A DNA stretch of 64,000 nucleotides from Convolutriloba macropyga (Eukaryota). The notes beneath the pieces are model-generated. The model did no database searches. It saw nothing but the letters and a program-made list of their open reading frames with translations, and was not told the DNA's origin. The stretch covers positions 17,546,001-17,610,000 of the forward strand of contig NC_134470.1 of assembly GCF_964194025.1 (NCBI RefSeq), given 5' to 3'. A program made the position numbers and the translations under genes. Position 1 is the first letter of the stretch. Each line of letters begins with the position of its first letter. Shown piece after piece: positions 1-64,000 of the stretch.

Positions 1-50
1 GTCGTTATTTTTGGCCCAATCAACAGATTCTATTTTTCACACAATGCATT

Positions 51-1672: not shown

Positions 1673-1736
1673 ACATTGCATGCACTGGAGCTGAACAAAA
1701 TCCGATAAAATTTTCCCCCTATTTTAACATTTTTTT

Positions 1737-2480: not shown

Positions 2481-2537
2481 TAGTTATTATTTTGTTCGAC
2501 TCATAATTTCTATATACTGAATTGAAATCTTTAAAGC

Positions 2538-3651: not shown

Positions 3652-3790
3652 GAAATCGTTTGTGATCGGGTTGATGGGCAACCTGCAGTTCAGTACTCAT
3701 ATTGATTGTCAAGCGATTCAGTTGTCAACGCCTTGGTTCACTGTCAGCGGGGGAAAGGCAAAAACTTTTTCGTTTGTAGACAGTTCTTGA

Positions 3791-4360: not shown

Positions 4361-4373
4361 CTGATTGATTGCA

Positions 4374-6300: not shown

Positions 6301-6368
6301 AAAAAACAAATGAATCAGTAAAATAAACAAACACGCAAACCTAAAAATTTCCGAAAAAGTTATTTAGT

Positions 6369-7600: not shown

Positions 7601-7935
7601 AGGCGGCTACTAGTTGATAGTCATGCAAACCCTGTCCAGCGAGTGCGGGCGAACTGGTTTGCTGACTATCATTAGTTGAGCTGACCAAAAATAAACTCGA
7701 GTCTTAGTCGTACAAGCCCTGTCTAGCGAGAGCAGACATTCTGGTTTGTAGACTTTGCAAAACACATCTCTTTTTATGTTAAGTATCTTTAGTTTTGTAG
7801 TTTAATTGATTTATACTCTTAAAAATTGTTTAGAGTAAATAAAATATCGAACAAACTGCCAGTTTTGAACCATGGACCCTTGGCGAGCAAGTAAGTTTTA
7901 ATTAAACACGCAGCCAATTCGATATTTGCACTAAG

Positions 7936-8591
7936 ATGTCTAAACTTGTTGTCGTTGGTGCGTCAAATATTGAAAAAGATTATGAGTTGTGCTGGTGTCA
8001 AAATGTGGACCATAAATGTATAAAGGACATTCATTTGCCTGAGTGGGTGGAAGATGTCAAATTTGTGAGCGTGCCTGGTGCTCGTGTAAATCATGAAACA
8101 AAAAGCCTCCAGTAATTTTTTCTTTGTTTTAATATGCAAAATGTTTAATTTTTGACATGTCTGTTTTTGTTTTGTATTTGTTTAGTAATCTTGTAACGGA
8201 GGCAATTAGGCACGCACCAAAAGCTGTTTTAATATGTTGTGATATTGTTGGAAATTCGCTGGAGTACCATAACGGTCATGAAGCGCTGGATGGAAAAAGT
8301 TGCGCAAAGGTAATAGAGGCGCTAGCGAAAAATTATACTGACATCAAATTCGTGGTGATGCACGCGCAGTGGAGAAAAAGTCTCAAGTTGGCTCAAAATG
8401 AAGAAATTGGTTACTTTAATAACATTATCCATAGAACAAGTTGTATTATTGACGTTAAAATTCGAACCAGCGCTAAGTTCACACGAATTGTTGACGAGGA
8501 GACGGGGCGGAAAGAGTCAAACCTGAATGTTCACCACAGCCGTCAAACAGTGTGCTTCAATGTTGGTATTCTTATTAGGAAGGCAAAGTGA
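7936..8591 (+). CDS. Spliced SGNH/GDSL-fold protein in the Polinton (exons 7936-8111, 8186-8591)
   Basis: MSKLVVVGASNI (block I-like), FVSVPGARV (II), DIVGNSL (III), NVHH (V-like). A GTAATT...TTTAG intron at 8112-8185 restores the frame exactly. Confidence 0.6.
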
Positions 8592-10943: not shown

Positions 10944-11521
10944 CCCGGGTCGAGGTTTTATCAAAAAATAATGTAAGATTAGCGATGAATAGCGGTGAAA
11001 AAAAACTTTTTTCACCGCAAAGCGCCTTCATTTTTTAGCGTTGAATGCGGTGAAAGCGGTGAATTTTTGTAAGATTTGCGTTGAAATTAGCGGTGAAAAA
11101 ATTTTTGTTCACCGTATTCACAGGATTTCTTACAAAAAAGAACCTGCCGTACACGGGTACGAACCACTCACCTCCCGCATGTCACCAACTTCATAGTCCA
11201 CTGACCCATCTGTCACTTACTTCAATAATATTTCCTGCGAATTTAAGATAACTTAATTTAAGATTTGCGATTTTAGCGATGAAATTTTTTTCACCGCATT
11301 TTGCTGGTAGCGGTGAAAATTTTTTTCACCGCATTCCTCTGGTAGCGGTGAAAAATTTTCTATCACCGCTTATGCGGTGAAAAAAATTTCACCGCTTAAA
11401 ATTTTTTTTCACCGCATTCATCGCATTGAGCGTGAATTTGAGTAAAAAAAACACTTTTACTCAAATTCACCGCAAATCTTACATCTTTTAGCGATTTTTA
11501 GCGGTGACACCTCGACCCGGG
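10944..11521. mobile_element. Non-autonomous CACTA/EnSpm(CMC)-type element, CCCGGGTCGAGG TIRs, 2-bp TSD AA
   Basis: AA|CCCGGGTCGAGGT...ACCTCGACCCGGG|AA, with many subterminal GCGGTGAA/TTCACCGC repeats in both orientations. Confidence 0.85.
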
Positions 11522-12815: not shown

Positions 12816-14360
12816 TCAATTTCGTTTTCGGGTTCCTTGTTGTTTTTGTGGTTCGGGATGTGTGTCTTGAGACTGTTGGTTTTGAGAGGAAGACGTTTGC
12901 GGAGCGGGTACTATTGATATTAATTGTTGTTCCTGAACTGTTGCGTTATCATTGTCGTTGATTGGAGCTGCATTTCGACGACGTTTGGGCTGTGGTTTTG
13001 TAGGTTTGCGTACAGTGAGGGCTCTAGACACGTTTGAATTGACTGAGGAAACAACTGAGGTGGTGTCTCGATGCCGATGTCGAATTTTGATTTCCCCTCG
13101 CTTTTGTTTTTTGATGTCGTTGCTGTGTTTGGCAATCTTTATCTCAGTTGTCTGTTCATAAGGCGCAGGACGCCTTTGTGCGTACGTCCAGAGATTTGTA
13201 GATCTTTCAGCCTTGGTGCCAAACTTTGCCAGATCACTGTCTCTGACTTTGACTGGCGTTCGCCCCGGTTCATTAATTATGGTTGTCGTGGGGGAGGATT
13301 TAGTGACGAACGAACCGGGTTTTAAAACTTCATAAAGCCCAGCAAGTTGTCGTTTCGCCCTCTTTTTGTTTGGTATCTTTCTGGCCAGCTTCACACTTAA
13401 TGATTTTTCTGTTCTCGGAATGGGGTTCCTAAGTTTGGGGTGGATTATGAACCGCGATTCCTTGTCGTCTGAGTCGCGGTACCGGAGGCCTGCGTCTTGT
13501 TGTTCTTTATTCATAGCCGTCTCAATTTCCAGATCGCTTCTCTCCGGGTTGACCCATCCAGCATCATCGAGGTATTTGGCTACAGGAACTGTATCAGCAT
13601 CTAAATAGTGATTAATAATTTTTTCATATGTTAGATTTAAACTTGATGGACATGTGCTAATATTACGCAACGGAGTATTCACCAGACGACCAAAATGAGC
13701 TTCGAATGGAGTTATCTGTGTTGTTTTCTGTCTTGTTATTCGTAAGTCAAAAACTATCTGTTTAATTGCTTTAGATGTAGAAAATGAATCTTTATTTTCA
13801 GTTTTCATACAGGATAACCGCCGTTTAATTGTCTGTACCATTCGCTCCACTAATCCAATTGCTCTATGGTCTCCGACTGGCGCATCGAGAATGTTAATGT
13901 TATTTTCATTACAATAGTTTGTAACTTGTTTACCTACTAAACAAGTAGCTTGATCTAGGCGGATTGTTCGCGGTATTCCATGAGTATAAGCATAATCGCG
14001 GAGAAATTTTACATTTGTCCCCTTTGCATGTTCAAAAATTCGAGCTGTTGGATACTTTGAATAACTATCTATACATGTCAGAAAGTAAATATCTTTATCT
14101 TTATCATTTGTTATCGGGCCCCCAAAGTCAATTTGAATTTCTTCATTTGGTTCTTGACAAGCCTTGTGAGGATACCATTTAGATTTTGGTATAATAGGTT
14201 TCAAATTCTTACCAATATCGGTACACGGACCGCAGTCTGATGCTTTGGCGAGAATCTCTCTATGCATATATGGCCACCATGCATACTGAGATAATGAAAT
14301 CATGCCATAACTACCAGGGTGGGTCATGTGTATGGATTCCAGTACCGCGTCCTTTATCGA
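12816..14360 (-). pseudogene. Gypsy integrase, out of frame with the upstream pol
   Basis: HMTHPG...C..C zinc finger, QIDFGGP, RLDQAT, GLVERMVQTIK. The frame reads SIKDAVLESIH from about 14360. Confidence 0.92.
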
Positions 14361-17300
14361 ATCACATGAAGGTCCTTCCAGAACGAATATATATAGGGGC
14401 TAACTTCCTTACAGCGGTTCTCGTCGTCTTGGAGGACACAATCTCTAATTTCTTTTAATACTGCGTCCTTACTTGTTAGGACGGCTAAGAAGAATTTTGT
14501 AAATAGTTGGTTTAAGTTACTTTCAAAAATTTCCTCTTTGGATAATTCAATGTCTTGTATTTCGGGTGATGATGAAATTGGGGTGTGAATGTTAGGGCTT
14601 GTACTGGTTGTCGCTATAGGGGTGGATTGGGTGCGGAAAGTTACTTTGGGAGCAGTAGTAGGAGTTGGGGGGTTAGATTGAGGCACTTCTTTTGCGGACA
14701 TTGTTATGTGGTTCACTTTATTTTCTGTTTTTGCGGCTGAATTACAATTAAATTTATTTGGCTGGATTCGTGATGCGGATGCAGTAGTGTTTTTAATCAA
14801 TTGATTTGCAAGGCAATTAAAGTTGGAAATGAATTCAGAATTGTAATTGTTTACTTGTGCTCGAGGAATGAGTGGATTAATTGAGGTATTTGAGTTATTC
14901 GTGCTAATGTTAGCAGGTTTGCAACCGTGGACGCGCGTCATGTTTACTTGTTGGTTATAATTACTGGTTATGTGCCGCTTTTGGAAAGGAATTTTATTCG
15001 CGTGACTAAATAAAGATGTAATTGCGTCGCGAATACGGGAAATTGTTGCTACCATGAATTCCTCATCGTATTGATTGACACTTTTAGCGTTTTGATTTGG
15101 TTGACGCGAAATATAATCAACTAAACCCATTCTGGTACCAGGAATATGTTCGATGTTAAAATCAAATGGTAACAAACGATCAATCCATCGTGTTAATCTA
15201 CTGTTGTAGGATTTATTAGAAGGGTGTGATTTTAGAACTGAAAGAAGTGCTCTGTGGTCTGTTAAAACTGTGAAAGTCTTCCCAAATAAATAATATTTAA
15301 AATATTCAATGGCCCACACCACCCCAAGTAATTCGAGTTCATTTACACTATATCGTTCTTCGTTGCTATTAAGAAAACGAGACGCAAAAGCTACTGTTTT
15401 CCACCCTTCACAATCTAATTGTTCAAGCTCAGCGCCTAAACCTTGGCGAGATGCATCGCATTTGATTCGCGTTTCCAGTGTTGGATTAAAATGAGTGTTT
15501 TCCGTAGCGTTTGCAATAATAGTTTTGATGTGTTCAAAATGTAATTGATGAGTTTCATTCCAAATAAATTTTTCCTTTTTCTTTAATAATGGCCGAAGGG
15601 GATGGCATATTTTGGCAAGATTAGGTATAAATTTGCTTAAGTGATGAACACTACCTAAGAATGATCGTAATTGTTTCAATGTTTTTGGAGCTTTGATTTC
15701 CGCAATTGCCGCTGTTTTAGATTCTATAGGTTTAACACCACTTTGTGAGAATGTGAAGCCAAGCCAATTTATTTGATGTTTTGCGAAATGACATTTACTC
15801 AAATTATTTCGGAGGTTATCGGATTCGAGTTTTTGGAGACATTTGTACACGTATTTGAGGTGCGATTCCTTGGTACCTTTGCCAACTACAATTATGTCAT
15901 CCAGAAAACAGTATCTGTTAGTTAGTCCAACCAATGTGTAATCCATTGCCTTTTGAAACTCAGCCGTCATATCCGTAAGGCCATAAAATCCCGTTTTAAA
16001 ACGATATGTGCCAGTTGCATCGCCGCAGATGATATTAAAATTGCAATGACGTGCGGTATCCGGATGCAGTTTTAATTGACTATAGGCATATTTTAAATCA
16101 ATCGTTGAAAAGTAGACATGATCTCCTAGGTTTGAATTATTAATATGTTGTGAGATTGAATCGATAAGACTATCTATATTTGGCATTTGGTACTTGTTTT
16201 TGTGGATCGCTTTATTTAATATTTTTGAATCAAGAGCTAAATTTACAGATTTGTCCTTTTTGACCGTGATTACAATGGGGGAAATGTAGTTTTTATCCGA
16301 ACATTCTTGTAATTTTTCGATGTGTCCTTGTTCAGAAAGTTTCTTCAGCTCAGCAGATACTTTGTCTAGTAAATTTATAGGAACACGACGGCCCTTTTGG
16401 TGGGATGGAGTATAGTGTTTGTGGAATTTTGAACGAACTGTATGTACTTTGGACTTACCAATTCTGGAGATTAGATCGGGATAATCAAAAGCAATCTGTT
16501 TTTTGATTGGGCAATATTCTTGATCTACCTGATTAATTGTTACATTGTTACTTGATTGATGTATTGAGAGTCCAAGAGCTGGAAACAAATCTCTACCCAA
16601 TAGAGAACGATGTCCGTCTGCCACTACTTGAATTTCTATTGGATTTGCGTACCAATTACTGCTTTGAATTGAAGTTTGAAGAATGCCCACCGTATGAATA
16701 GGTTCGTTTGAAAATGTTTTCATTTGTTTAGGATTCGCTTCGCGTATCCACTTCGGTTTTGAATCATGAGAAATGATGGAGTTTGCCAAGGATTCGTTTA
16801 TTATTGTGCATACGCTGCCCGAATCCACCAAAACATTTGTTGATGTTTTACCAAGGATTACGGGAAGATTGATTGCATCCACTGAAGTTGAGGAATCTGT
16901 TGAAGATACTGCTGCTACACAATTATCTTCATCTGAAGAATAGTTTGACTCCAAAACAGGATCAAAATTAGTCGAAATCTGATTGACATCTTCATTTTGA
17001 TCGTCCTTTTCTACGTTATTGACCCGCGGTTTAGGTTTTGGGTAGGAATTGGGATCTTTAGGTTTTCGGCAAACTTTTGCGAAGTGGTTCTCAATACCAC
17101 AGTTATTGCATCTTTTTCCCCGAGCGGGACATTTATTTCGGTGGTCAGAGGTCCAATTGGATCCACAGAAATGACAGGTTGTTGGCTTTTTCCGTGCTGT
17201 TGTATTCATATTGGAGAAAGGGGTAGCATTTGCGATGCGCATCCGTTGTACTTGATTAACAGTTAAATGTGACTCGGTTTTGCTTGCATTCATTTTTAAT

Positions 17301-18052
17301 TGGTTGAGCGTACCCATCTCGATATTGATCGCTATTGCCAATGTTTTTTCCGGGTCGACTGTTTCCTTAAGGAGCTCCTTTTGAATGATTTCATTTTGCA
17401 TGTTTGCGATAAAGACGTCCCGGATGATCGTGTCTCCTTTATCTCCAAGGTCACAGTTTTCCGAAAGTTCTTTGAGATGTCCATAGAATTTCTCAATAGG
17501 TTCTCCCTTTTGCTGTTTTCGGGTGAGGAAGAGGTATCTATCGAAGGTTATATTGTGGATCCGAATGAAGGTTGTATTGAGAATACCCCACAGATCTTTC
17601 GTTGAAATTGTTTCAAGATTGATGGTCGAATTCTTTGAGTTGAATACGCGCCGACCTTCCATGCCTAAGCTCAAGTACATCAAAGAGGATGCTTTTCGAT
17701 CACATAACTTCCACGGTTTATCACCGCAAAGTATACCAACTGCTGTAACTCGTTGACACTGATTCTTCCACGCTGTTTTTGCTTGTTCCTTGCGGGTACG
17801 TCGGTCTCGCTCTGATTGTGCCGTCGGGTTGTCAACTGCATCTTCATATGCTGGTTCAGGAGGTAGGAGGACATGGTCTGGGGGGTCCAATAAGAGGAGA
17901 TCCACTTCAATTCCTTCTCGGGCGAGAATTGCGAGTTTCAATTGTATTCTCCAAAACTCCCAGCGAATTGGAGGTTCTAGTGTTGCCTTTTCCCAAAAGG
18001 GTTGAATTCCAAGTGGGGATTTGCCGCTGTCCTTTGTCGCTGACTGCGCCAT
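14354..18052 (-). pseudogene. Gag-PR-RT-RNaseH polyprotein (single ORF), cut off before the integrase by a deletion/frameshift
   Basis: Zn knuckles CHFCG..H..C and CNNCGIENHFAKVC, protease LVDSGS, RT IDLKYAYSQL and FLDDI, RNaseH CDASRQG and YSVNELELL. Confidence 0.93.
18040..18051 (-). promoter_or_regulatory. Primer-binding site, tRNA-Ser-like
   Basis: Minus-strand TGGCGCAGTC directly after the LTR CA. It is complementary to the GACUGCGCCA 3' end of tRNA-Ser used by 17.6/297-type elements. Confidence 0.75.
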
Positions 18053-18456
18053 GTTATACTTAATCGTATTGAATACTTTAGGATTCGCGTTGCGAATACT
18101 TGTGTCGAGATTACGATAGGAATTGCTAGGCGAATACACAATAACTTGTGTAATACGAATTCTGATTATTGGAGACGCGGCGCGAATCCGTTGTTAAGTC
18201 TAACTTAAGATTATGAAGAGCGTTTACAGAGTAACTTGAATTCAGATAACTAAATGAAATTATGATTACTTATGATAAACTAGTATGAACAAAATATGAA
18301 ATAATTTAGTAGACTTACGGGAATATTAATATAGGTGAATAAATAGAAGTCATAACTTTTAGTTATAAAACGCATGATATAATTATAGATATAGAGGATA
18401 AATAATTTAGTACACATAGGAGTTTCGATATATAATAGGTATCCATACGTATCACA
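18052..18456 (-). repeat. 5' LTR
   Basis: Direct repeat of 11601-12005, followed on the minus strand by the PBS. Confidence 0.95.
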
Positions 18457-49929: not shown

Positions 49930-50230
49930 CTGAGATGAAAATGATTCAGCATACAAAACCGATATTAGCTAGGAGTTTATTGTTTATTGACAACTTTTCA
50001 TTCTTAACCCGGGCCGAGGCGTACACCCGTATTCCACCGTTATTAAGCGAGAATAAGGATGTAAAGCCAATTCCACTCTTAATTAGCAGGGATAAGAGTG
50101 TAAGAGTGTAATTTTGAGAAAATTACACTTTAATGTACACTCTTTACACTCTTTAATACACCCTTATTACACTTTTAAAAATACACTATAATTACACTCT
50201 TTATTCCACTCTTTATTACACTCTTGAGCG

Positions 50231-53200
50231 AATTAGGTGAAGCAAATGTAGAACTTAATGAAAATCTTTTGTTAATAGCATTTCGAAAAAGACAAGTTAG
50301 AAAGTCTATTTTAGCCCGTTTTGTTGCCCCGATAATACAATTTTTGAAATTGTGTAGAAACAAAAGCAAATAATTTGATTTGTATACAGAATTTTAATGA
50401 AACCTCCAATTAGGTGAAGAAAATGTCGAACTTCATTAAAAACGTTTGTTAACAACTTTTTGAAAAAGACGAATTGAGAAACCTATGTTAGCCCGTTTTT
50501 TGGCCCCGATAATACACTTTTTGAAATCGTGTAGAAACGAAAGCCTATAGTTTAATTTGTATACAGAATTCTCATGAAATCTCCAATTAGGCGAAGAAAA
50601 TGTCGAACTTCATTAAAATTGTTTGTTAACAACTTTTTGAAAAAGACGAACTGAGAAGCCTATGTTAGCCCGTTTTTTGGCCCCGATAATACACTTTTTG
50701 AAATTGTGTAGAAATGAAAGCCAATAGTTAGATTTGTATACAGAATTTTTATGAAATCTCCAATTAGGTGAAGAAAATGTCGAACTTCATTAAAAACGTT
50801 TGTTAACAACTTTTTGAAAAAGACAAATTGAGAAGCCTATGTTAGCCCGTATTGTTGCCTCAATATTGCACTTATTGAAATTGTGTAGAAAAAGAGCCAA
50901 TAGTTTGATTTGTATACAGAATTTTAATGAAATCACCAATTAGGTGAAGAAAATGTCGAAGTTCACTAAAAACGTTTGTTAACAACTTTTTGAAAAAGAC
51001 GAATTGAAAAGTCTATATTAGCCCGTTTTGTTGCCCTGATACTGAATTTTTTGAGATTGTGTAGAAATAAAAGCTAATAGTTTGATTTGTATACAGAATT
51101 TTTATGAAATCTCCAATTAGGTGAAGAAAATGTCGAACTTCATTAAAAACGTTTGTTAACAACTTTTTGAAAAAGACGAATTGAGAATTCTATATTAGCC
51201 CGTTTTGTTGCCCTGATACTGAATTTTTGAGATTGTGTAGAAATAAAAGCCAATAGTTTGATTTGTGTACAGAATTTATATGAAATCTCCAATAAGGTGA
51301 AGAAAATGTCGAACTTCATTTAAAACGTTTGTTAACAACTTTTTGAAAAAGACGAATTGAGAAGTCTATATTAGGCCCTTTTGTTGCCCTGATACTGAAA
51401 ATTTTGAGATTGTTTAGAAATCAAAGCCAATAGTTTGATTAGCCAATAGTTTGATTTGTATACCGAATTTTTATGAAATCTCCAATTAGGTGAAGAAAAT
51501 ATCGAAGTTTGTTAATTACTTTTTGAAAAAGACAAATTGAGAAATCTATATTTTGTCCATTTTGTTGCCCCAATTATGCACTTTTTTAAATTATGTTGAA
51601 ATAAAAGCCAACAGTTTGATTTATATACGGAATTTTAATGAAACCTCCAATTAGGTGAAGAAAATGTAGAACTTTTTAAAATCCTTTGTTAACAACTTTT
51701 TGAAAAAGACGAGTTGAGAAGCCTATGTTAGCCCGTTTTGTTTCCCCGATAATACACTTTTTGAAATTTTGTAGAAATGAAAGCCTATAGTTTAATTTGT
51801 ATACAGAATTCTCATGAAATCTCCAATTAGGCGAAGAAAATGTCGAACTTCATTAAAAACGTTTGTTAACAACTTTTTGAAAAAGACGAATTGAGAATTC
51901 TATATTAGCCCGTTTTGTTGCCCTGATACTGAATTTTTGAGATTGTGTAGAAATAAAAGCCAATAGTTTGATTTGTGTACAGAATTTTTATGAAATCTCC
52001 AATAAGGTGAAGAAAATGTCGAACTTCATTTAAAACGTTTGTTAACAACTTTTTGAAAAAGACGAATTGAGAAGTCTATATTAGGCCCTTTTGTTGCCCT
52101 GATACTGAAAATTTTGAGATTGTTTAGAAATCAAAGCCAATAGTTTGATTAGCCAATAGTTTGATTTGTATACCGAATTTTTATGAAATCTCCAATTAGG
52201 TGAAGAAAATATCGAAGTTTGTTAATTACTTTTTGAAAAAGACAAATTGAGAAATCTATATTTTGTCCATTTTGTTGCCCCAATTATGCACTTTTTTAAA
52301 TTATGTTGAAATAAAAGCCAACAGTTTGATTTATATACGGAATTTTAATGAAACCTCCAATTAGGTGAAGAAAATGTAGAACTTTTTAAAATCCTTTGTT
52401 AACAACTTTTTGAAAAAGACGAGTTGAGAAGCCTATGTTAGCCCGTTTTGTTTCCCCGATAATACACTTTTTGAAATTTTGTAGAAATGAAAGCAAATAA
52501 TTTGATTTGTATACAGAATTTTAATGAAATCTCCAATTAGGTGAAGAAAATGTAGAACTTCCTTAAAAACATTTGTTAATAACTTTTTGAAAAAGACGAG
52601 TTGAGAAGTCTATATTAGCCCGTTTTGTTGCCTCAATAAAGCAATTTTTGAAATTGTGTTGAAATAAAAGCCAATAGTTTGATTTCTATACAGAATTTTA
52701 ATGAAAACACCAATTGGGTGAAGAAAATGTCGAACTTCATTGAAAACGTTTATTAACAACTTTTTAAAAAAGACAAGTTGAGAGTGTATATTAGTCCATT
52801 TTGTTGCCATAATAAAGTAATTTTTGAGTATGTGTGGAACTAAATGCCAGTATTTTCATTTGTTTACAAAATTTTAATGAATTGTCGAATAAGGTGCAGA
52901 AAATGTCCAATTTCGTGGAAAAACCTCTGTCAATAACTTTTTGAAAAAGACGAGTTAGAAAATCTGTGTTAGCCCATTTTGTTGCATTGAAAAAATGCTT
53001 TATATATTTAACAAGTTTGTGTAGATGTAAATGTCAATACTTTGATTTGTTCGCATAATTTTAATGAACCATCGAAATAGGTGAAGAAAATGTCGAAATT
53101 CATGAAAAACCTCTGTTAATAACTTTTTTAAGAAGACGTGTTAGAGAATCTATGTTATCCCTTTTTGTTGTCGTGATAATTTATTCTATGGGTTTATGTA

Positions 53201-54060
53201 GAAGTAAATGCCAATAGTTTGATTTGTTTACAAAGTTTTAATGAACCTTCCAATTAGGTGAAGAAAATGTCGAACTTCATGAAAAACCTATATAAATAAC
53301 TTTTTGAAGAAGACGAGTTAAAAGACTTATATTAGCTCATTCTGCTGCCGTGATAATTTACTTTATGAGTTAGTGTAGAAGTAACTGCAAACATTTTGAT
53401 TTAATTACAAAATTTTAATAAACCGTCGAATTAGGTGAAAAAAATGTTTAACTTCATGAAAAACGTCTGTTACTAACTTTTTGAAGAAGACAAGTTAGGA
53501 GACCTATGTTAGCCCATTTTGTTGCCGTGATAACGTACTTTATGAGTTTGTGTAGAAGTAACTGCAAAAACTTTGATTTAATTACAAAATTTTAAGGAAC
53601 CCTCGAAATAGGTGAAAAAAATGTTTAACTTCATGAAAAACGTCTGTTACTAACTTTTTGAAGAAGACGAGTTAGAAGACCTATGTTAGCCCATTTTGTT
53701 GCCGTGATAACGTACTTTATGAGTGTGTGTAGAAGTAACTGCAAAAATTTTGATTTAATTACAAAATTTTAATAAACCGTCGAATTAGGTGAAAAAAATG
53801 TTTAACTTCATGAAAAACGTCTGTTACTAACTTTTTGAAGAAGACGAGTTAGAGACCTATGTTAGCCCATTTTGTTGCCGTGATAACGTACTTTATGAGT
53901 GTGTGTAGAAGTAACTGCAAAAACTTTGATTTAATTACAAAATTTTAATGAACCCTCGAAATAGGTGAAAAAAATTTTGAACTTCATTAAAAACATTTGT
54001 TAATAACTTTTTCAAGAAGACGAGTTAGAAAGTGTATAATAGCTTATTTTGTTGCCCTGA
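50231..54060 (+). repeat. ~177-bp satellite, ~21-22 copies, with a 710-bp (4-mer) higher-order duplication
   Basis: AATTAGG(T/C)GAAG..AATGT.GAAC at 50231, 50408, 50585, 50762, 50938, 51115 and onward. The variant block at 51421 is repeated at 52131. Confidence 0.95.
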
Positions 54061-55062
54061 TATTGTACTTTCTAGAACGTTTTAGAACCGATCTCGAAAC
54101 TTTTTATTTCTACCCAAAATATCAAGAAAATGGTCGATTCGTGGTCAAAAATTAGTCATTTTTGTCGATTTTGGACAAAATTCTCCCAAATTTTAAGAGC
54201 AAACATATATGTTTTTGGTAGCAAAATAAACTAGAATTTACGCTTCCAACAGCCATATAATTATCTTTTTGAACTATTGCCAAACAAGAGAATGCGAGGG
54301 CAATGTAGAGACCGAAATCAGGGTCGATTTTAGCGAAATTTTCGAATTTTCAAAGTTGTTTAGTTTAATAACTTTTTTGTTACACGACGTTTTTAAAAGT
54401 ATATTATATCATTTTCTTGCCCATTTAATCCTCTTTACGAATATATATGGGTTGAAAAGTTTCGGTTTAATTTCATTGCCTAATTTTTCGATTTTCCAAA
54501 CTTTGTTGAAAATAGGCAAATTTCAGCCAAATTGTCAAAAATCGAGTTTTTATTTCTTTATTTTTTTTAACTTTTTTAACGCCAGGTTGATGCCCCAGTT
54601 CATGCTGATTCCAAAACATATTCATTTTTTAAATTTGGTTCAGTAGTTTTCGAGATATAAGCCTTTTTCGGACGCATACCAGCACCCCCACCGTCCCAGG
54701 GCACCGGGCGCCCACCCGCAAACCTTTTTTTTATGTGTTCCCGTTCGATTTTTGAAAACCATCTTACTTAGTTAGATTCTATATGAAACCAGCTTTCCAA
54801 TGATATACTTTTTAAATTTCAAGTTTTGAAATGCTCACTTCATAGTTGTTCACCATAAAGCAGGGTATGAAAATTTCGTTTGGTGTGTTGCCTCAGAGGT
54901 AACGTGACATGCTAATTGTGAGGCAACACTGGTGGAGACGGCATCACCTGCATCCCCTCACTGAACTGCCATGAATAGAGCATTTGAAATTGCGCAACGT
55001 ATACGAAAGTTCCGAAAGCTCACACAGTAAGCCGGAAATAGTTTAATTATTTCCAATAGGTC

Positions 55063-55220
55063 GATGTACGGCAATAGGTGGAATTGAATGGGTCGATGTA
55101 ATAGGTCGATGCACAGGTCGATGTACGGCAAAGACGATGGGTCGAACGATGGGAGGAACGATGGGCTGGTCGAATTAGTTCCCATAGGTCGATGTACAAT
55201 AGGTCGATGTACGGCAAAGA
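55063..55220 (+). repeat. Short GGTCGATG(TACGGC) repeats upstream of the SGNH gene
   Basis: About 6 copies of GGTCGATG within 160 bp. Confidence 0.75.
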
Positions 55221-55415
55221 CGGAACGGACCCATACAAAAGTTATATCGTTGGAAAGCTCTCGTCAAGACGAAATCGATAGGCTATATGGCAGCACCCAA
55301 TACGAGCTTACTATACTATATCTGTACTATTATACTATTGGTTGGAAGTTTGTGATGTATTAGTCGCTAAGCGTTTATAGTTGGTGTATCGTTTTTAGAT
55401 ATTGCTGTTGAAAAC

Positions 55416-56060
55416 ATGGACCGTAAACGAATCGGCAGACCTTATGCTTCCGCTAATGCACCACCCAAAAAAGCCCTCAAGCCACTTTTCGCGGATGACC
55501 AAATCAATGGCAGGGTGACAAAGTTGCAACCGAACGGGAGGAACGCTGAATTCATTTTTAACAATTTTGTTGGTGAAAGTGTGCATACTGCAATAGTAGG
55601 GGACTCAATCTTTGATAGTGTTTGTATAAGGAACTGCGTCACATATTCATTGTCAGGCGGACGAATCGAACAATTTCATCTGTTACTCGATACCCTCTCT
55701 GTATATAGGAACGTCATCTTAGCTGTCGGTGGCAACAATTTGTCAAATTGGGGTGAACCCGGAGAGGATCCATCAGTTGTTGTTGATAAATAGCTGAGAA
55801 GCTTGTACAATGCCATCAGGGGCCTTGAAAATCGCCCAAAAGTGATAGTGTGCTCAGTGTTGAAAAGGAATCGCAGCCATTGGAACATCCAACGATTCAA
55901 TGCGGTGCTAAGGCACTCGCAGCTGCCCTTCTTTAAACTTCATCAAGAAGTTTGCAAAAGCAATTTGTTTCTGAGCGACGGTGTCCACCTTAATTTGAAA
56001 GGTAGAAAAGCATTGGCTTGTGCAATGAATAAAGTTGTGAGAGAGCATCAGCTGCACTAA
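55416..56060 (+). pseudogene. SGNH/GDSL hydrolase, one in-frame TAG at 55791-55793
   Basis: AIVGDSI (block I), SLSGGRI (II), LAVGGNNL (III), SDGVHLN (V). ORFs 55416-55793 and 55803-56060 are the same frame. Confidence 0.85.
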
Positions 56061-56304
56061 TTTGATTGACTATTGTTTTCGTTGTTTGTGTTCGTGCAGC
56101 AATTTCCTTCAATTTGTTTTATTAAATCTTTGGTGTTTGTTGACAACTAAGTGGATCTTTTACTAATACAATTCGCAATTTCTTGTATATACTCATCAAG
56201 GTTAATTCATCGTCTTACCTGCAAAATTTTTTTCGAGCATCTGTTAATTTAATCGCTTGCTGAAGCCCTGAAAAGTGGGATAATTTTGATGTGGTTTTAA
56301 CATA

Positions 56305-57310
56305 GGATTTTATCCGCTTCGCTTGGTACAAAGATTCAAATTTCAGGCTCGTGTTTGCGGGTGTCTCTGCCTGCATCGGTATGTCCTCTCAGCGGATTTT
56401 ATCCGCTTCGCCCGTTACAAACAGATTCATTAATTAGGCTCGTGTTTGCGGGTGTTTCTGCCTGCATCGTTATGTCCTCTCAGCGGATTTTATCCGCTTC
56501 GCCCGGTACAAAGATTCAAATTTTAGGCTCGTGTTTGCGGGTGTTTCTGCCTGCATCGCTATGTCCTCTCAGCGGATTTTATCCGCTTCGCCCGGTACAA
56601 AGATTCAAATTTTAGGCTCGTGTTTGCGGGTGTCTCTGCCTGCATCGCTATGTCCACTCAGCGGATTCTATCCGCTTCGCCCGTTACAAACAGATTCATT
56701 GATTAGGCTCGTGTTTGCGGGTGTTTCTGCCTGCATCGTTATGTCCTCTCAGCGGATTTTATCTGCTTCGCCCGGTACAAAGATTCAAATTTTAGGCTCG
56801 TGTTTGCGGGTGTCTCTGCCTGCATCGGTATGTCCACTCAGCGGATTCTATCCGCTTCGCCCGTTACAAACAGATTCATTAATTAGTCTCGTGTTTGCGG
56901 GTGTTTCTGCCTGCATCGTTAAGTCCTCTCAGCGGATTTTATCCGCTTCGCCCGGTACAGAGATTCAAATTTTAGGCTCGTGTTTGCGGGTGTCTCTGCC
57001 TGCATCGCTATGTCCACTCAGTGGATTCTATCCGCTTCGCCCGTTACAAACAGATTCATTAATTAGGCTCGTGTTTGCGGGTGTTTCTGCCTGCATCGTT
57101 ATGTCCTCTCAGCGGATTTTATCCGCTTCGCCCGGTACAAAGATTCAAATTTTAGGCTCGTGTTTGCTGGTGTCTCTGCCTGCATCGCTATGTCCACTCA
57201 GCGGATTCTATCTGCTTCGCCCGTTACAAACAGATTCATTAATTAGGCTCGTGTTTGCGGGTGTTTCTGCCTGCATCGTTATGTCTACTCGGCCTATTTT
57301 ATCCGCTGCG
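56305..57310 (+). repeat. Tandem array of mostly alternating 89/91-bp units (180-bp dimer), ~11 monomers, each with palindrome AGCGGAT-TTT-ATCCGCT
   Basis: Unit start AGGCTCGTGTTTGC at 56345, 56436, 56525, 56614, 56705, 56794, 56885 (AGTCTC variant), 56974, 57065, 57154, 57245. Confidence 0.95.
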
Positions 57311-57550
57311 CGCAATAAAAATAGATTGCATAATTAGGCTTGTTTGCGGTTGATTTTGCTTTTTGAAAATTAAATTGTTCTTTCGAGGTTTTTTCCTGTT
57401 GACATTAAATTAAGTGAGAATTAGTGAATCCTTTGGTTTTATGGTTTAATTTAGTTGACTTTTGGTCGTTGAATTTAAATGACTTTGTTACCATGTCTAA
57501 ATGAGACTCGTTCAGCTAATGGTCTAATTCGTTTACTATTAATTTTAGAG

Positions 57551-59290
57551 ATGCCTTTGAAAATTGAGTTTGTGTTCCTTACGGAAGATTGCCAAGTGTT
57601 AAAATTGAGTTTGTTTGATCCTCGGTGGCCCAAAACCCTGCAAATAAATGAGCGTATGAAACTAAATGATGACGATAAAACATCGCTAATGATTGATGGC
57701 TCTGAGGTTGATTGCGTTCTACTGAAGCATGGTCCACCAGGTGCGATGGACGTGGAGTTCAGAAAAAATCAAGAGATCTATGGTGCGTTTGCGGATCAGT
57801 GTAGTGGTAATTTGGACGTCACCCCACGTAAGGGAGCGCGCTGGGCTGGCAGTAGTTTGACACCAGTTGAGAGTTTTGGACCTGAAAGTCCCAGGGTTCT
57901 GGTTAGATCTCTTGCTTTCGTTTTCTTTATTTTCATGAACGGTGTAAAAATAAAATTCTTTTTGCAACGTGGTAGGACTTTGTTCATCAAGTTTTTGTAG
58001 TATCTTGGCCTTAATAAGAAATTTTGTTGCTTTGTTTGATCTCTTTCCAATGTCGGTTACGTTGCCCTGTTTAGAAATGCTCAAATCATGAAAAGATTGT
58101 GGAAGTCCTCAACGAAGACAAACGTATGTTCAATGAACTTCTTCGAGTCTATAAGAAAACAGTACAGGATTGCAATAAAAAATTGGAAAGCCAGCTACAA
58201 CATTTCAAAGAGATTGTGAGTATATGATTTTCACTGGTCTTGTACAAGTTTTTGCTCATAAGCACTTCACAAATGTTCGACTTTAATCTTCAAATATGCA
58301 GTTTGAAATTATTTGGCTGTTCAGATCTGGAAATTTAATTCGATGTGGGTTGTTTTCTGGATGAAATCAATTTCTTATAGAGTTTTTTGACTTTTAGAAA
58401 GAACTCAAGAAATTAGATGACTCTGTGGACGAGGAGACCAGTGAAGTGCTACCTAGTTTCTATGGAGACGTTGATGTTGACAATCTTCCTGTACCCTCAA
58501 CTCCCGATGAGTTCGGAAGAGTGCTAAGAACAGCACTTTGGGGAGAAACGGGTCTTGAGCGAGAAATAATTTCTCCGAGAGAAAGCGAGGTGCGGAAACC
58601 CGCATCTCCGAAAAGAACTAAGCTTTTCAAAGGTATTTACAAGTACTGTTTTTCAAGAAACTTAAAATTTTCAATATGGGTTCCCTCAAAAAATTTGCAG
58701 ACCCTACACGCTCATCAAGGCAAAAAGTGGTACGGAACTTTTAGCAGCTTTCGGATTTTTCGAAAAATTGGATTTTATTGGTTTTCTCTGTCTTCCCCAA
58801 AACGAAGAGCTGAAATTGTTAAGGTGTTTTGTATGTTCAAGGGCTTGTGAAGAAGCATTTCCCCCCTCGTCTGTGGCCTGAGGCTTACAACGACGCCCGT
58901 TCGTCTGCGAATAGATCGGGCATGGATGCACTGCGGTACCGAAAAAGGAAATCGGACCCATTCTGGTGCGCACAAATGAAAGAAAAGGCAATGTCTAAGA
59001 GAAACAAACAGACAAAAAGGCGACCGAATGAGGAGTCTGACGGTCAAAATTTAAGCAATACACAAACTGATGAGAGTGATTCTGAGCCAGGAAATGTTGA
59101 ATGGAGCCTCAAAGTCTGGTGCGCACAAATGAAAGAAAAGGCAATGTCTAAGAGAAACAAACAGACAAAAAGGCGACCGAATGAGGAGTCTGACGGTCAA
59201 AATTTAAGCAATACACAAACTGATGAGAGTGATTCTGAGCCAGGAAATGTTGAATGGAGCCCTCAAAGTCTTTTGCAATTCTCTATTTGA
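57551..59290 (+). CDS. BEN-domain-like protein 1, 4 exons (57551-57901, 58075-58215, 58398-58632, 58842-59290)
   Basis: GT-AG introns join in frame. Coiled-coil, then DEFGRVLRTALWG...ISP...PASPKRTKLFK|GLVKKHFP...AYNDARSSANRSGMD, a BEN-like helical pattern. Confidence 0.7.
58962..59268 (+). repeat. 153-bp tandem duplication in the last exon of BEN-like gene 1
   Basis: TCTGGTGCGCACAAATGAAAG... at 58962 and 59115. WCAQMKEK...NVEWS occurs twice. Confidence 0.95.
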
Positions 59291-59901
59291 TTTGATGACT
59301 TGATATTTTGTGCTGTTATTAGACTTTGATTAATGGCCGCGAAATAATAGCTGAGGCTGTTATTGTCCTTCTCTTGGTTTTTTTTTCGCGTGCGTGACGT
59401 TATCTTTCACTTTTAGGTGAGCGAGTATTTTTGGTCACACGTGATTTTCCTCACTCTCAAATGATTTCCTCGTTATTAAATTGACTTTTCTTTATTTTAA
59501 AGAGATGAGGTAAAATGAGTGTTTGACACACTACTTGAAAGTTACTATAGAACAGTTAATAGCAGGAGCAGCTAATAAATTATACAGATACATAATTAAA
59601 ATTTAACATCCTTTTTCGCGCGGCTGTTTTCTGGCAATCTGCCAGCTATGTTTGGTTTTCTTTTGTTTATTGAATTTTGGATTGACTCTAATTGCAGAAA
59701 ACATTACGATTCCATCTAATGGCTACCTCAAATTTTTAGATTGATTATACTTGACTCATTGTTCGTTTATTCTTCAAACTGGCGGTTAAAACGTTAAAAT
59801 TTAGACTGATTCTAAACATTTTGAAATTTTTGGTTTCTCTATTTCGTTGCAAACACAATCGAACGTAGTAAAATAATTTAAAAGTTTTTAGATCGTTGAA
59901 A

Positions 59902-61540
59902 ATGAAACCACCTTCGAGAACTGATCGCAAGAAAAGCACCAACCTATTTGATTCGGAGGCCGAAAGAGAAGACAGTATCCGATCCAGTATTTTAACAAAT
60001 AACACGGCGTGGCTCTTCGTTGACAATAAAGAGCTGATTTTGATTACTGTAAGCAGCTTTAAATGGCCACCCAAGACTAAGCCATCTGAAAAGCTAAGTC
60101 TAATCGAAGGTGATAGTTTTGACCTGCGATTCAAAGATGGAAATGTGTCCTGTCGTTTGTTGGCAAAAGGAAACATGAAAAAAGTTGAAGAACTCATGAA
60201 CAACTATCAGCAGGAGCTAGATGCAGGTAAACGGCCGTCTGAATTGCGAAAAACAGTGCTGGCGAATCCTAAGGCACCTGTTGTCGATGAGGTTAATTTC
60301 TTGTGTCGAGGACGTGCACCCGTGATGAACAGTACCGTAGTCTCTCTTGGTAAACCAGCAGGCGTCGAAAAGTCAAAAGCCTCCAATTCTGCGTTATCTC
60401 AGCCAGTCATTTCAGCAAAGAAAAAGAACAATACGGTAAAATGTGACCTTTTTTAACTAATTACAAATGGCATCTTAGAGATTGTTAAAGGCCTCTTTGA
60501 AATTGTCGAAAACTATGAGACTGGTAAACGGTAGAAGGGCAAACTGATAAATGTCGTTGCTGTGCTTTGAAATATTTGCGCTTTTTTAGCCTGAGCCCGT
60601 TCTTTCTCAACCTTCTACTTCTGCGATCACCAGCTCAAGCACACTTCCAACCATTGCGGACAACGCAGTCGATTGTGGGCCAAATTGCCGTCTTCTTCAG
60701 GAATATCTAGATGAGCATGTTGTTGAGATGAATAGTTGGATGAAAGCATTTGAGGAGCTGAAGAAAGCGGACGAAAAAAGACGGGCAAACATATGCGCAA
60801 GAATTGACGCTAAGGTACCCCATCGCTCATTAAGTTTTTCTACTTTTTATGAAATGAACCTACTTGCTAGCCTTTTCAAAAGATCTGAAATTCTCAAGCA
60901 TCATAGAGGCTTAAGTTCTTGTGAATAAATTTCACAGAGTTTGTTACCTGTAAATGTTTAGGCTACCCAATTGAAAGAAACTCGCCTCTTAGATATTCAT
61001 GGGTTCCAAAGCATCGATGACTATCCTTCGCGGAGCGCAGGTATCACAGCAGTCATGCACAACGGTGAAGCCTTATGATGATTCACGCTGGCTCAGATGT
61101 CGGAAAGCTGGGTAGAGCATTGTTTGAGAAGTTGTTTCCGGAAAATGAGCGTGGAAATTACATTCTGGCACCAAAAAGACATGAGGCTGATCGTAGACTT
61201 GAAGCTCCCAGTGAAATTCTCGACAAGTTTACGAGTATGTTTTTAAAATTAGACATGAAGCCTTCCTTTCCATTAGCATTTTCAAAAATCCCTCTTGCGC
61301 GTTATTGGCATTTTAAAAAGATCTCTCTTGCGTGTTAAAATTTTAACCTGCAAAAACCAGCACTTCAAGACAGGTAATCGGCATAGAAGTTAATAAGAGA
61401 TTGTCTTCTTGCTTTCAGAGGTTGTGCAGCAGAAGTACCCTGACACTCCTGGGCTCGCTTTTGAGAAAGCCAGAAAATCGGCAAATCAATACGGCAAGGA
61501 TTGCCGAGGCCGACATTCCAATGTAGAAGAAAATGAGTGA
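59902..61540 (+). pseudogene. BEN-domain-like protein 2, 4 coding exons (59902-60435, 60590-60814, 60962-61234, 61419-61540), 1-nt frameshift near 61071
   Basis: GT-AG introns in compatible phases. DVGKLGRALFEKLFP...ILAPKR...LEAPSEILDKFT|KVVQQKYP...AFEKARKSANQYGKDCR. Paralogous to gene 1. Confidence 0.7.
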
Positions 61541-61935
61541 GGATTCTGCCTCAATTGCGAGCATTCTGCCTGAAAATTTCATTTTCCATTAAGGAGTGCT
61601 GTTTTATTTTTAATTGATCTCGAACGAACTTTGTAGCAATTATTGTAAACGCGTTGGTCTCTATGCAAAAATTTTGCTTGAACATTTTGATTTTTTGAGT
61701 GACTTTTACGCCCTTGACTATCTGCGTTTTAAGTGATCATAATTTCTCTCATTCAAAATTTCAAGTTCCTAATTTCAATTGGCGGCAATTTATTGCTGAA
61801 AGTCAAATGATAAGTGCGCCAAAATTGAAAATAATTTTTCACTTTAAATCTTAATAGCGGTTTTTACTAACCTCTAATGATCAGGCTGCAATTTGTAACT
61901 GATTAGAGCTCCCACTAGTTGTTCGAGAGCAATTT

Positions 61936-62058
61936 TCCCGACGTTAGTCAGTTTTGTTTAGTGAACTTGAACTAACCTTTCGTAACTTTCTTATATAGTC
62001 TCCCGACGTTAGTCGGTTATCTTTTGTGAACTTGAACTAACTTTCTGTAACTTTCTTA
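61936..62058 (+). repeat. ~65-bp direct repeat x2 upstream of the SET-transposase ORF
   Basis: TCCCGACGTTAGTC...GTGAACTTGAACTAAC...GTAACTTTCTTA occurs twice. Confidence 0.8.
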
Positions 62059-62253
62059 GATCCAGTTTGTTTACTTTGTTTAAACATTCGCTGTTTTGCC
62101 AGCGTGAGAAAATTTGTATTGTCTATTGATCCTGAATTAAACATTTTATTAAAACAATGATTACGTTTCCATAAAAGAACTTGGTTAAATAGTTTTTCGA
62201 AATTATCTCTATGACGGGCATAACGTAACCACTGGTTAAGTTTTTCAAGTGAT

Positions 62254-63057
62254 ATGATTACATGCGAAGATTTAGTGATTGCGGATGGACAAGTTGTGCG
62301 TCAAGTTTTAACCAGTTTTAATGTCTGTCCTCAAATGATGCTGCCCCTGAACAGCTTCGAACAGTTCGAGAGCCGCATGAAATTCGACAAACAGCTTTCA
62401 AAGGCTTATTTTTCGCTAAAAGAACTATATGAGCTTTGTATTGCGTCAGGTTTTAAAATCTTGCCCGACAACTATGGTGGCTATGGCCTCTTCAACAATA
62501 CGGGAAAGGTATTAAAACCTTCATTGCAACCCCTTAGACCTTTTCCTGTGGGCCCAATTGAAACTGTTCCTCTTGAACTGCAAAATGAGATGTCCGATTT
62601 GTCTGTAATGCGTGGCGAGCGTGAGCAGGATGAAGTAGTACTGCTTGGCCCCATTCGTTTTGCAAATCACTCTTGTTCGCCTAATACAAAGTTTTTCTTA
62701 GGATACACAAGTTCTTTTCTCCCCCACAACAAGTGCGTGTTTCTTCAAGTAATAGACTCCATAGGGCTTGGTGAAGAAATAACTGTGAGTTACGGATCAA
62801 ACTACTTCAAAGACGGTAGTCTTAAATGTAGGTGCCCACATAAGGAAAAGCACGTGCCGCTAAACAGAGAAAATTTAGAACCAACGACTCCTCGATTCCA
62901 AAGTCCTGATGTCCCCACTCAGCTGACATTTTCGTCAAGTACCACAAGTGCAATCTTAGGATCTGGTGAGAGTAGTTCCAACTACACTGCAAGTCAGTCT
63001 AGCATTGGTACACCGACTGATTGTGAACTTTCGGCAAAGAGAAAATTTAGAAATTAA
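62254..63057 (+). CDS. SET domain, SUV4-20/Set9-like (H4K20 methyltransferase family); N-terminal part of a probable SET-transposase fusion
   Basis: SGFKILP, SDLSVM, LLGPIRFANHSCSPNTKF and GEEITVSYGSNYF...CRC parallel SUV420H GFEILP / NDFSVM / LGPAAFINHDCRPNCKF / GEEISCYYG..FF...CEC (recalled from memory, not aligned by tool). Confidence 0.85.
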   Translation: MITCEDLVIADGQVVRQVLTSFNVCPQMMLPLNSFEQFESRMKFDKQLSKAYFSLKELYELCIASGFKILPDNYGGYGLFNNTGKVLKPSLQPLRPFPVGPIETVPLELQNEMSDLSVMRGEREQDEVVLLGPIRFANHSCSPNTKFFLGYTSSFLPHNKCVFLQVIDSIGLGEEITVSYGSNYFKDGSLKCRCPHKEKHVPLNRENLEPTTPRFQSPDVPTQLTFSSSTTSAILGSGESSSNYTASQSSIGTPTDCELSAKRKFRN

Positions 63058-64000
63058 CGGAAAAGGCGGGTCAAAAGAAGAATCTTAGAAGGTTCGAGTC
63101 GCGAAATCAGAACCTTCATACACCAGATAGATGCCACTCGCTCTTCGGAAGTTGAAACTGAGGAAACAGATACACAAGTGAGTTCGCAATGTTCTGCTGA
63201 CGATTACCTTGAAACCGAAGCCTCTTTTGAACCCGAACCTGAATTTGACCTCCCAATTGGAGAAGAATCTGAGGTGACCTCCAATGATTATGACGAAGAT
63301 GATCTTGATGACAGTGATGGCACTGATGTGGCAGAAAGAAGTTTCCAGTTTTCTTCGAATCCGTTAACTTGTAACTCGAATGTAACTGTTCATAATGCGT
63401 CAATGGGTTTATTTGCAGTTGCTGCTCGACATTGTCTACCCGACGAAGCTCTGTTCGATTTGCTGAAATGGCAAAAAATTATTCATCCCCATGACAATGT
63501 GCCTACTCACAATTTTATAAAAAATGAAACCAAGAAATTAACGGATCTCTACGTAAAGGACACAGAAAAAAATGCCAGCGGAGAAGTTATTTTTCTTAAC
63601 TTTGCAGAAAAACTAAAGGAGAAAGTAGAAAAGTACATCAACGAAATTATAGATTACGCTAACCCAGAAACCGAAACGGATCTCAAGCTAACAAGTCTTT
63701 TCGATGACGGGACAATCAACGTGAAACTAATTTTAAACATAGATGGAGTTGAAGTTCGAAAGTCGAGTGATTGCTCAGCCTACCCTGTTTGGGTTGCTCT
63801 TGCTGATCTGCCGCCAAAATTAAGAGCTTCATTTGACAACATCTTTCTTTGCTCATTGTGGTACGGAAAAGGAAAAGTTTTCTGGGACCCTATATTTAAA
63901 CACTACAGATCTAAACTTGCGAAACCCCAGAACATTTGTTACAAAGGGAGACTATACGAAATCAGTTTTACAACAATTTTTCTCGTGGTAGACCTTGTGT
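63058..64000 (+). CDS. CACTA/EnSpm-type DDE transposase, N-terminal half, running off the window; same frame as the SET ORF
   Basis: Open frame absent from the ORF track: RKRRVKRR, acidic linker, ARHCLPDEALFDLL, LILNIDGVEVRKSSDCSAYPVWVALADLPPKLRASFDNIFLCSLWYGKGK (first Asp 63742), and VVDL (second Asp 63991). Confidence 0.88.

Follow-up and report, generated by a model that had tools for sequence, protein, structure and literature searches.

The segment 50008-64000 of a 64,000-nucleotide stretch of the Convolutriloba macropyga genome (RefSeq assembly GCF_964194025.1, contig NC_134470.1, positions 17,546,001 to 17,610,000 of the forward strand; this whole stretch is referred to as the window, and its own numbering is used throughout) is likely the left part of a cut-and-paste transposon of the CMC type, which is present in many copies and has miniature inverted-repeat transposable element (MITE) derivatives; the copy in question measures at least 23,050 bp. 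The layout of the family comprises a terminal inverted repeat (TIR), subterminal repeats, a 5' satellite, an SGNH esterase gene, a mid array, two genes named A and B, a SET-transposase gene, a 3' satellite, subterminal repeats and the closing TIR. A first-pass annotation of this DNA had proposed, from 50008 onwards, a terminus with subterminal repeats, a 177-bp satellite, an SGNH gene, an array, two spliced genes and a SET-transposase, all on the + strand, and these parts were recovered in that order. The features of the element, including the open reading frames (ORFs) and the presumed target-site duplication (TSD), are the following:

50006-50007 (no strand): AA, presumed left half of a 2-bp TSD, by analogy with four complete relatives
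50008-50019 (+): left 12-bp TIR, CCCGGGCCGAGG, exact match; an inverted copy closes the paralogue
50020-50230 (+): subterminal region with about nine (T)ACACTCT(T) motifs in both orientations, found by motif scan at 50095-50224
50231-54071 (+): 5' satellite, tandem repeat with a 177-bp unit, 21.6 copies, 83%
54072-55415 (+): non-coding spacer with an inverted repeat (54791-54813 / 55237-55259) and ATAGGTCGATGTAC repeats (55050-55215)
55416-56060 (+): SGNH/GDSL esterase gene, intronless and broken, an ORF with SGNH motifs
56305-57311 (+): mid array, period 180 (dimer of a unit of about 90 bp), 5.6 copies, 94%
57551-59290 (+): gene A, spliced, exons at about 57551-57898, 58076-58216, 58398-58634 and 58842-59290
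59902-61540 (+): gene B, spliced, paralogue of A, first exon from 59902 to about 60435, conserved blocks at 60661-60809 and 60938-61233, last exon at 61419-61540
61936-62058 (+): direct repeat with a 65-bp unit (1.9 copies), preceding the SET-transposase gene
62254-63057 (+): Suv4-20-like SET part of the SET-transposase ORF (Pfam SET, E 4.7e-8)
63058-64000 (+): acidic linker, then the beginning of the CMC-type DDE transposase, in the frame shared with SET
L008:13239-20785 (window-equivalent 65492-73038): 3' satellite, 174-bp unit

The proposal that these parts make up one giant element was borne out by a paralogue that could be followed from end to end. Other copies (loci L001 to L004 and further ones) were fetched after a search with the transposase fragment had pointed to near-identical sequences on long contigs belonging to a single ENA assembly, and two of these loci, L003 and L001 on contig ctg35542, together hold a complete element of 16,507 bp, which has its left terminus at L003:5288, is closed by the exact inverted sequence CCTCGGCCCGGG at L001:15775-15786 and is flanked by TT on both sides. 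The TSD was 2 bp long in all four complete elements recognized, namely this paralogue (TT) and three MITEs of the window (AA, TT and TG). Moreover, the homology shared by the window, L003 and the sister sub-family L009 begins exactly at the first C of CCCGGG, while the 1.5-kb flanks upstream are unrelated to one another. Two further places show the cluster of (T)ACACTCT(T) motifs that follows the left terminus: the right end of L001, at 15442-15743, and the MITE at 37191-37489. A piggyBac assignment was also considered, given that the window flank reads TTAA and the terminus begins with CCC, and it was rejected, as the corresponding flanks of other copies read GTTT, ACTG, GAAA, AATT and ATTG.

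The window copy itself continues beyond the window. Locus L008 (ENA contig ctg37959) is 100% identical to 52254-64000 over 11,747 bp with no mismatches, so that it represents this very locus in an independent assembly; it reaches 9,057 bp further. In this extension the transposase frame remains open to window-equivalent position 65373 and is followed by at least 7.5 kb of the 174-bp satellite, within which the ENA contig ends. The search for an inverted terminus downstream of 50008 was empty in the window, as the first-pass annotation had stated for its last 14 kb, and equally empty in the 9 kb beyond; no inverted cluster of the subterminal motif was seen downstream in the window either.

Comparison among copies confirmed the expected conservation of gene order. 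Loci L001, L002 and L004 share 88-98% identity with the window over the aligned single-copy segments and keep the order of the parts, with L001 being devoid of the SGNH segment; the same order is present in L003/L001 and in L009. Besides, the gene set and a mid array recur in families with transposases that are just 31-41% identical: L007 (transposase 41% identical) carries SGNH, a 49-bp array, A, B and the SET-transposase; L006 carries a GDSL gene, a 156-bp array, a single A/B-like gene and an intact SET-transposase of 1006 amino acids; and L005, from a different NCBI assembly, carries an array, an intact SET-transposase of 995 amino acids, A, B and SGNH. Between the window family and L009 only the exons, the ends and the arrays can be aligned, and in the SGNH gene, the first exon of gene B, the SET domain and the transposase the non-synonymous divergence (pN 0.16-0.23) lies far below a synonymous divergence that is saturated (pS 0.71-0.88). 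This result, which answers the call for a comparison of substitution rates in the cargo genes, indicates that the genes are maintained cargo rather than chance captures. Taken together, these comparisons mean that the four genes and the mid array are, as far as sequence evidence goes, an ancestral and selectively maintained module of the whole clade. The window copy is young (96-98% identical to L004, its nearest copy) but defective, as three of its genes carry one lesion each.

The possibility that the first-pass annotation had itself named as fatal, that the terminus at 50008 belongs to a short MITE, or to a satellite carrier, and that the genes are an unrelated neighbour or a host cluster, was weighed against these data. 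MITEs with the same terminus are indeed frequent, with three in the window, and the closing TIR of the window copy was not met within the sequence available. On the other hand, the same left end, satellite, genes and order are found at three unrelated loci, the L003/L001 paralogue is closed by an inverted terminus with a matching TSD, and the genes occur in tens of copies, so that chance adjacency is already contradicted and we regard it as highly improbable. The 12-mer CCCGGGCCGAGG, with up to two mismatches, has eight matches in the window against 0.43 expected, and six of the seven matches other than that at 50008 are the ends of three MITEs:

10944-11521 (+): sister-family MITE with TIR CCCGGGTCGAGG, TTCACCGC subterminal repeats and an AA/AA TSD
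28228-28601 (+): second sister-family MITE, likewise with TIR CCCGGGTCGAGG and TTCACCGC subterminal repeats, and with a TT/TT TSD
37191-37489 (+): 299-bp MITE with exact CCCGGGCCGAGG-type TIRs, the subterminal motifs and a TG/TG TSD

All three are short and non-coding and have the TIR and TSD type of an autonomous partner. The part of the objection that stood is the existence of a MITE with this terminus (37191-37489); the part that did not is its ownership of the terminus. The first 220 bp or so after 50008 share 78-90% identity with the left half of this MITE and the right end of L001 matches its right end almost base for base, which shows that the MITE was derived from the large element by deletion. 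Similarly, the right end of L006 reads CCTCGACCCGGG followed by AA and bears TTCACCGC subterminal repeats, as do the ends of the TCGAGG-type MITEs at 10944 and 28228, and these MITEs thus have a partner family with an intact transposase gene. From this sequence evidence, the L006-type family (end at L006:16380-16833) may still be mobile. A piece of about 35 bp with GGTTCGAACCC-like sequence is common to the two sister-family MITEs (about 28385-28400, and about 11160-11175 on the minus strand) and to L006 (about 16650-16660); it resembles a tRNA T-arm or a B box of RNA polymerase III promoters, and ARAGORN reported no tRNA. More generally, Rfam and tRNA scans gave no matches.

The SET-transposase gene is intronless and about 1040 codons long, and the window copy has TAA at 63055-63057, between the SET domain and the transposase, where other copies read CAA; the copies L001, L002 and L004 carry more lesions in this gene than the window copy. 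The residues D189, D272, C291-x2-C294, H507-x3-H511 and E531 are invariant between the window ORF (L008:10925-13120) and eight relatives. A DDE triad combined with C(2)C and H(3)H motifs is the signature of CMC transposases (PMC12730594), and by these invariant residues the transposase is, at the level of sequence motifs, of the CMC type. The search with the transposase recovered 414 homologues (E <= 1e-3) in a library with one representative per 50% cluster, the number being therefore a count of clusters. Of 20 long homologues, 18 have a Pfam SET match along with matches to DUF1258 and/or Transposase_21, and several exceed the curated cut-offs (for instance P0014 with 42 bits on Transposase_21, and P0084 and P0125 with 45 and 51 bits on DUF1258), which depicts the fusion of SET and transposase as old and widespread.

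The element had been called a CACTA element, and of this label the CMC-type transposase stood, whereas the termini (CCC...GGG) and the 2-bp TSD did not agree. CACTA elements have CACTA termini and a 3-bp TSD, while Mirage elements have a 2-bp TSD according to the Repbase classification and are the closest CMC lineage by this character. The TSD length of our element thus matches Mirage, a comparison that concerns the TSD; the DUF1258 family matched by relatives is a Caenorhabditis elegans family that may be linked to Mirage. Chapaev elements have invariable 5'-CAC...GTG-3' termini and a TSD of 3-4 bp (PMC4079192). With CCC...GGG termini and a 2-bp TSD, the hallmarks of both CACTA and Chapaev fail, and the element falls outside CACTA/En-Spm and Chapaev in the strict sense of termini and TSD.

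The SET domain showed a clear affinity. In a single-sequence search against the PDB all ten matches were SUV420H1 or SUV420H2, and a profile of the SET domains of ten family members matched these same proteins with E-values from 2e-26 to 3e-24, the next SET family being NSD2 at 1.5e-10, 14 orders of magnitude behind. The residues N138, C141 and N144 (NHxCxPN), the catalytic Y180 and the post-SET C192 and C194 are invariant, while the histidine of the NH motif is substituted in four of the ten relatives. By its motifs and closest similarity, the SET domain is accordingly of the Suv4-20/KMT5B/C type, and the earlier guess that H4K20 could be the methylated residue gained sequence support from the family profile, in which SUV420H1/H2 rank best.

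The hydrolase gene upstream of the mid array was also annotated correctly as SGNH. SGNH/GDSL hydrolases are marked by the SGNH fold and by four sequence blocks, namely I (GDS), II (G), III (GxN) and V (DxxH), and here GDS, GGN and D..H are conserved across 19 sequences, down to 22% identity. Matches to Pfam GDSL families were weak or at threshold level, the L006 homologue passing the Lipase_GDSL cut-off (25.1 bits, cut-off 23.6). In turn, an AlphaFold (AF2) model with a mean predicted local distance difference test score (pLDDT) of 83 gave 157 PDB matches with E <= 1e-3, led by TesA and GDSL lipases. The best fold matches, to TesA, GDSL and PAF-AH structures, reached E 2e-7, slightly better than the match to the ORF1 esterase of the ZfL2-1 retrotransposon (4c1b, E 6e-6). 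An SGNH-fold esterase encoded by a mobile element is a trait shared with the L2/CR1-type ORF1 proteins, although these belong to non-long-terminal-repeat (non-LTR) retrotransposons, a different class of transposon, and the esterase is here a stand-alone gene. The ORF of the window copy is interrupted by an extra in-frame TAG (55791-55793), which is not found in L004 or in a cluster of 52 members, where the SGNH ORF runs uninterrupted for 213 amino acids.

Regarding genes A and B, the claim that two spliced genes are present was supported by their comparison with L009, in which the exons alone align and the introns are unalignable, and by a GT-AG phase-1 intron at the homologous position in both genes. 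In both proteins, an alpha/beta domain at the N-terminus is followed by a probable coiled coil and then by a C-terminal domain, some 85 residues long, that is split by the phase-1 intron. The ORF of the first exon of gene B is a member of clusters of 43 and 58 sequences, and the model of its N-terminal domain has a pLDDT of about 90 for residues 21-110; neither the PDB (best E 0.5) nor BFVD contained a significant match to this fold, and its Tudor-like matches of low rmsd, with a probability of at most 0.33, are not claimed as a relationship. In the window, gene B is one base pair short between 61070 and 61071 when compared with L002 and L004, a deletion, and the last exon of gene A holds an in-frame tandem duplication of 153 bp (58962-59271, 99%) that is specific to the window copy, the segment being single-copy in L001 and L004. 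The description of A and B as BEN proteins, in contrast, found no backing. No Pfam family matched gene A, no BEN family was matched by the exons or by seven N-half and seven C-half translations, and profile searches of the PDB by halves gave none; two database searches for spliced or annotated A/B homologues likewise gave no BEN, the domain having been searched in parts. The C-terminal domain resembles the BEN pattern, a likeness that no tool confirmed.

The repeats differ in how they behave among copies. The 5' satellite occupies the equivalent position in L003 (about 85% identity) and in L009 (73-81%), the left end of the window family is 87% identical to that of L009, and the spacer up to 55070 is 81% identical to L009. 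The 3' satellite ranges from 3 kb to more than 8 kb among copies and showed no relationship to the 5' satellite when the two were compared; it is about 80% identical to repeats of L007 (518-959, about 4600-5200 and 15823-16565), even though the coding DNA of the two families is unalignable. The mid array measures 0.4 kb in L001 and 4.6 kb in L002, the extremes among the copies, and each of its units in the window contains the palindrome AGCGGAT-TTT-ATCCGCT and the motif GCGGGTGTCTCTGCCTGC. A sequence of about 18 nucleotides, GCGGGTKTNTYTNCCYGC (GCGGGT..CCTGC), is found in a single (+) orientation in the mid arrays of the window, L009 and L007 families and is retained in units of 90, 98 and 49 bp, while a palindrome of the form AGCGGR-N3-7-YCCGCT is kept in the window and L009 families. 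Both motifs are limited to the mid array in the window and in most loci, the exception being a short repeat upstream of the L009 transposase gene, where 2.4 copies of a unit bearing the mid-array motif stand in place of the 65-bp repeat. The arrays of L006 and L005 carry other motifs.

Overall, the non-coding modules are conserved between families above the level of synonymous sites, and they may be either constrained or swapped among co-resident families; strong constraint and modular recombination would both be informative outcomes. Within the spacer, a 23-nt inverted repeat (54791-55259, 87% complementary) flanks the cluster of ATAGGTCGATGTAC repeats. Additionally, the segment 54681-55241 has no detectable similarity to L004, which holds an equally long segment instead.

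In the mechanism that we propose, the transposase would recognize the TIRs and excise and reinsert the element, while A and B and/or the N-terminus of the transposase may bind the family-specific subterminal repeats or the motifs of the mid array. The SET domain, tethered to the transpososome, could then methylate H4K20 or another local substrate at the element, at the donor break or at the target, and such methylation might influence either the chromatin state or the repair of the break. The esterase would serve some accessory step, as may the ORF1 esterases of L2/CR1 retrotransposons. The complete version of this proposal, in which a transposase-tethered methyltransferase of the Suv4-20 type and two proteins recognizing array motifs would write the chromatin or repair environment of the element itself, is put forward as an unlikely hypothesis.

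Several explanations of the arrays and of the SET domain compete within this framework. The element could direct its own chromatin, with A and B binding the arrays and recruiting or cooperating with SET so that H4K20 methylation is written over the element, comparable to VANDAL and VANC. The specifically Suv4-20-like nature of a SET domain with conserved catalytic residues, the conservation of mid-array motifs across families with unalignable coding DNA, the purifying selection on A and B and the constant position of the array directly upstream of the A-B-transposase block (in L005, of the transposase) speak for such a role. However, Pfam and PDB profile searches recognized no DNA-binding domain in A or B, the L006 array bears a different motif, and H4K20me2/3 is mostly repressive or linked to repair, so that the benefit to the element is not obvious; we consider this explanation unlikely. 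Alternatively, SET may act at the breaks made by its own transposase, biasing the repair of the donor site or aiding the capture of the target, with the arrays being unrelated to this function. H4K20 methylation is a docking mark for 53BP1, and the Suv4-20 affinity of the domain would suit this role. Besides, essentially all members have SET joined in cis to the transposase, which would place it at the transpososome rather than make it a free chromatin factor. A precedent is Metnase/SETMAR, for which a role in repair is described (PMC2847698). Nevertheless, the argument is purely inferential, and SETMAR is a domesticated host gene with another SET family and a mariner transposase; we hold a repair or integration role to be rather unlikely. 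With the sequences at hand, chromatin control and a repair or integration role of SET are rated similarly and would not be distinguishable here.

It is also conceivable that the arrays are passive by-products of slippage and unequal exchange, shuffled among co-resident families by recombination and devoid of any role in transposition or regulation. The several-fold variation in the length of the mid array and 3' satellite among copies, the unrelatedness of the 5' and 3' satellites and the plain microsatellites at equivalent places in L006 and L007 agree with this idea, and so does the 80% identity of the 174-bp satellite between families with unalignable genes, as recent exchange would predict. 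Against it, all families in which SGNH precedes gene A have an array between the two, and the specific 18-nt motif persists in units of three different lengths; we judge a passive origin to be somewhat unlikely. MITEs without arrays still bear TSDs, from which it follows that the arrays are dispensable in cis for mobilization, and no more than that.

Some observations weigh against the reading of the segment as a CMC transposon that acts through its own repeats and enzymes. The right end and TSD of the window copy itself were not seen within 9 kb past the window, the termini read CC...GG instead of the usual CA...TG of CMC elements, and the transposase of the window family has no Pfam match, its CMC membership resting on motifs and on relatives that pass the Pfam thresholds. 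Among the four copies of the window sub-family that were examined there is no uninterrupted SET-transposase ORF, so that any current activity of this sub-family is hypothetical. Furthermore, non-coding conservation better than that of synonymous sites could reflect recombination rather than function, and L006 has microsatellites at the positions of the window-family satellites, which indicates that the outer arrays may be dispensable. Finally, the pairing of repeats with proteins, the activity of the SET domain and its substrate are at present deductions from sequence.

The transposon described here shares with known CMC elements the short TIRs, the reiterated subterminal motifs, the large size, the presence of several ORFs and the MITE derivatives, and differs from them by the SET domain at the N-terminus of the transposase. 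Its second proteins are encoded by separate genes, unlike TnpA of CACTA elements, which arises by alternative splicing. As in SETMAR/Metnase, SET precedes a DDE transposase in one polypeptide; SETMAR, however, is a single-copy domesticated primate gene in which a SET gene that already existed was joined to a mariner (Hsmar1) transposase, while the element found in the current study is multi-copy, has TIRs and TSDs, and combines a Suv4-20-like SET with a CMC-type transposase. The VANDAL elements of Arabidopsis are Mutator-type plant elements in which VANC causes hypomethylation, and only the idea of an element protein that acts on the element's own short tandem motifs is common to both systems, as an analogy; they have no sequence relationship, no search aimed at one having been made. 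SET domains have been reported in HarbingerS, oomycete MuDR and Helitron elements, together with SET and a DNA methylase in the red-algal Plavaka PAG2 and with TET/JBP enzymes in fungal elements (PMC12730594; bioRxiv 10.1101/2025.02.11.637652). These elements likewise keep a chromatin- or DNA-modifying enzyme in their gene set, but the enzyme is described there as a separate accessory gene, whereas here an enzyme of the Suv4-20 family forms one protein with the transposase and is accompanied by SGNH and two further conserved genes. Our search of the literature, Repbase excepted, returned no account of a CMC transposase joined to a Suv4-20-like SET domain and accompanied by this gene set.

Transposons with chromatin enzymes of their own are few, and the fusion of such an enzyme to a multi-copy transposase that has not been domesticated represents a natural counterpart of the SETMAR architecture. 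The existence of intact members (L006 and L005) makes the system open to experiment, and the question that it raises is the role of an H4K20-type methyltransferase in cut-and-paste transposition, be it the control of silencing, the choice of target or the repair of breaks. Should the element indeed write its own chromatin or repair environment, it would constitute a self-contained mobile module for chromatin programming in a eukaryotic genome. The element also illustrates how a transposon can carry and spread kilobase-sized satellites and give rise to MITE families.

Other mobile elements were identified in the window. The region 1-8000 (+) is a Polinton/Maverick-like block, in which the ORF at 614-1672 scores 38.6 bits against the Pox_A32 packaging ATPase, the segments 2538-3035 and 2983-3651 hold a split rve integrase, and further large ORFs are present without a Pfam match. 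Inside the ATPase ORF, the sequence CCCGCGCCGAGG (1487-1498, minus strand) matches the transposon terminus with one mismatch; it has no partner and is probably due to chance. The region 12816-18139 (minus strand) corresponds to the pol gene of a long terminal repeat (LTR) retrotransposon, with reverse transcriptase, RNase H and integrase in two long ORFs. This retrotransposon, the Polinton-like block and the spliceosomal introns point to a eukaryotic host, probably an invertebrate. Finally, a 41-bp stretch of the spacer between gene B and the SET-transposase gene (61603-61643) has an inverted match of 90% identity at 35961-36001, in an unrelated part of the window.

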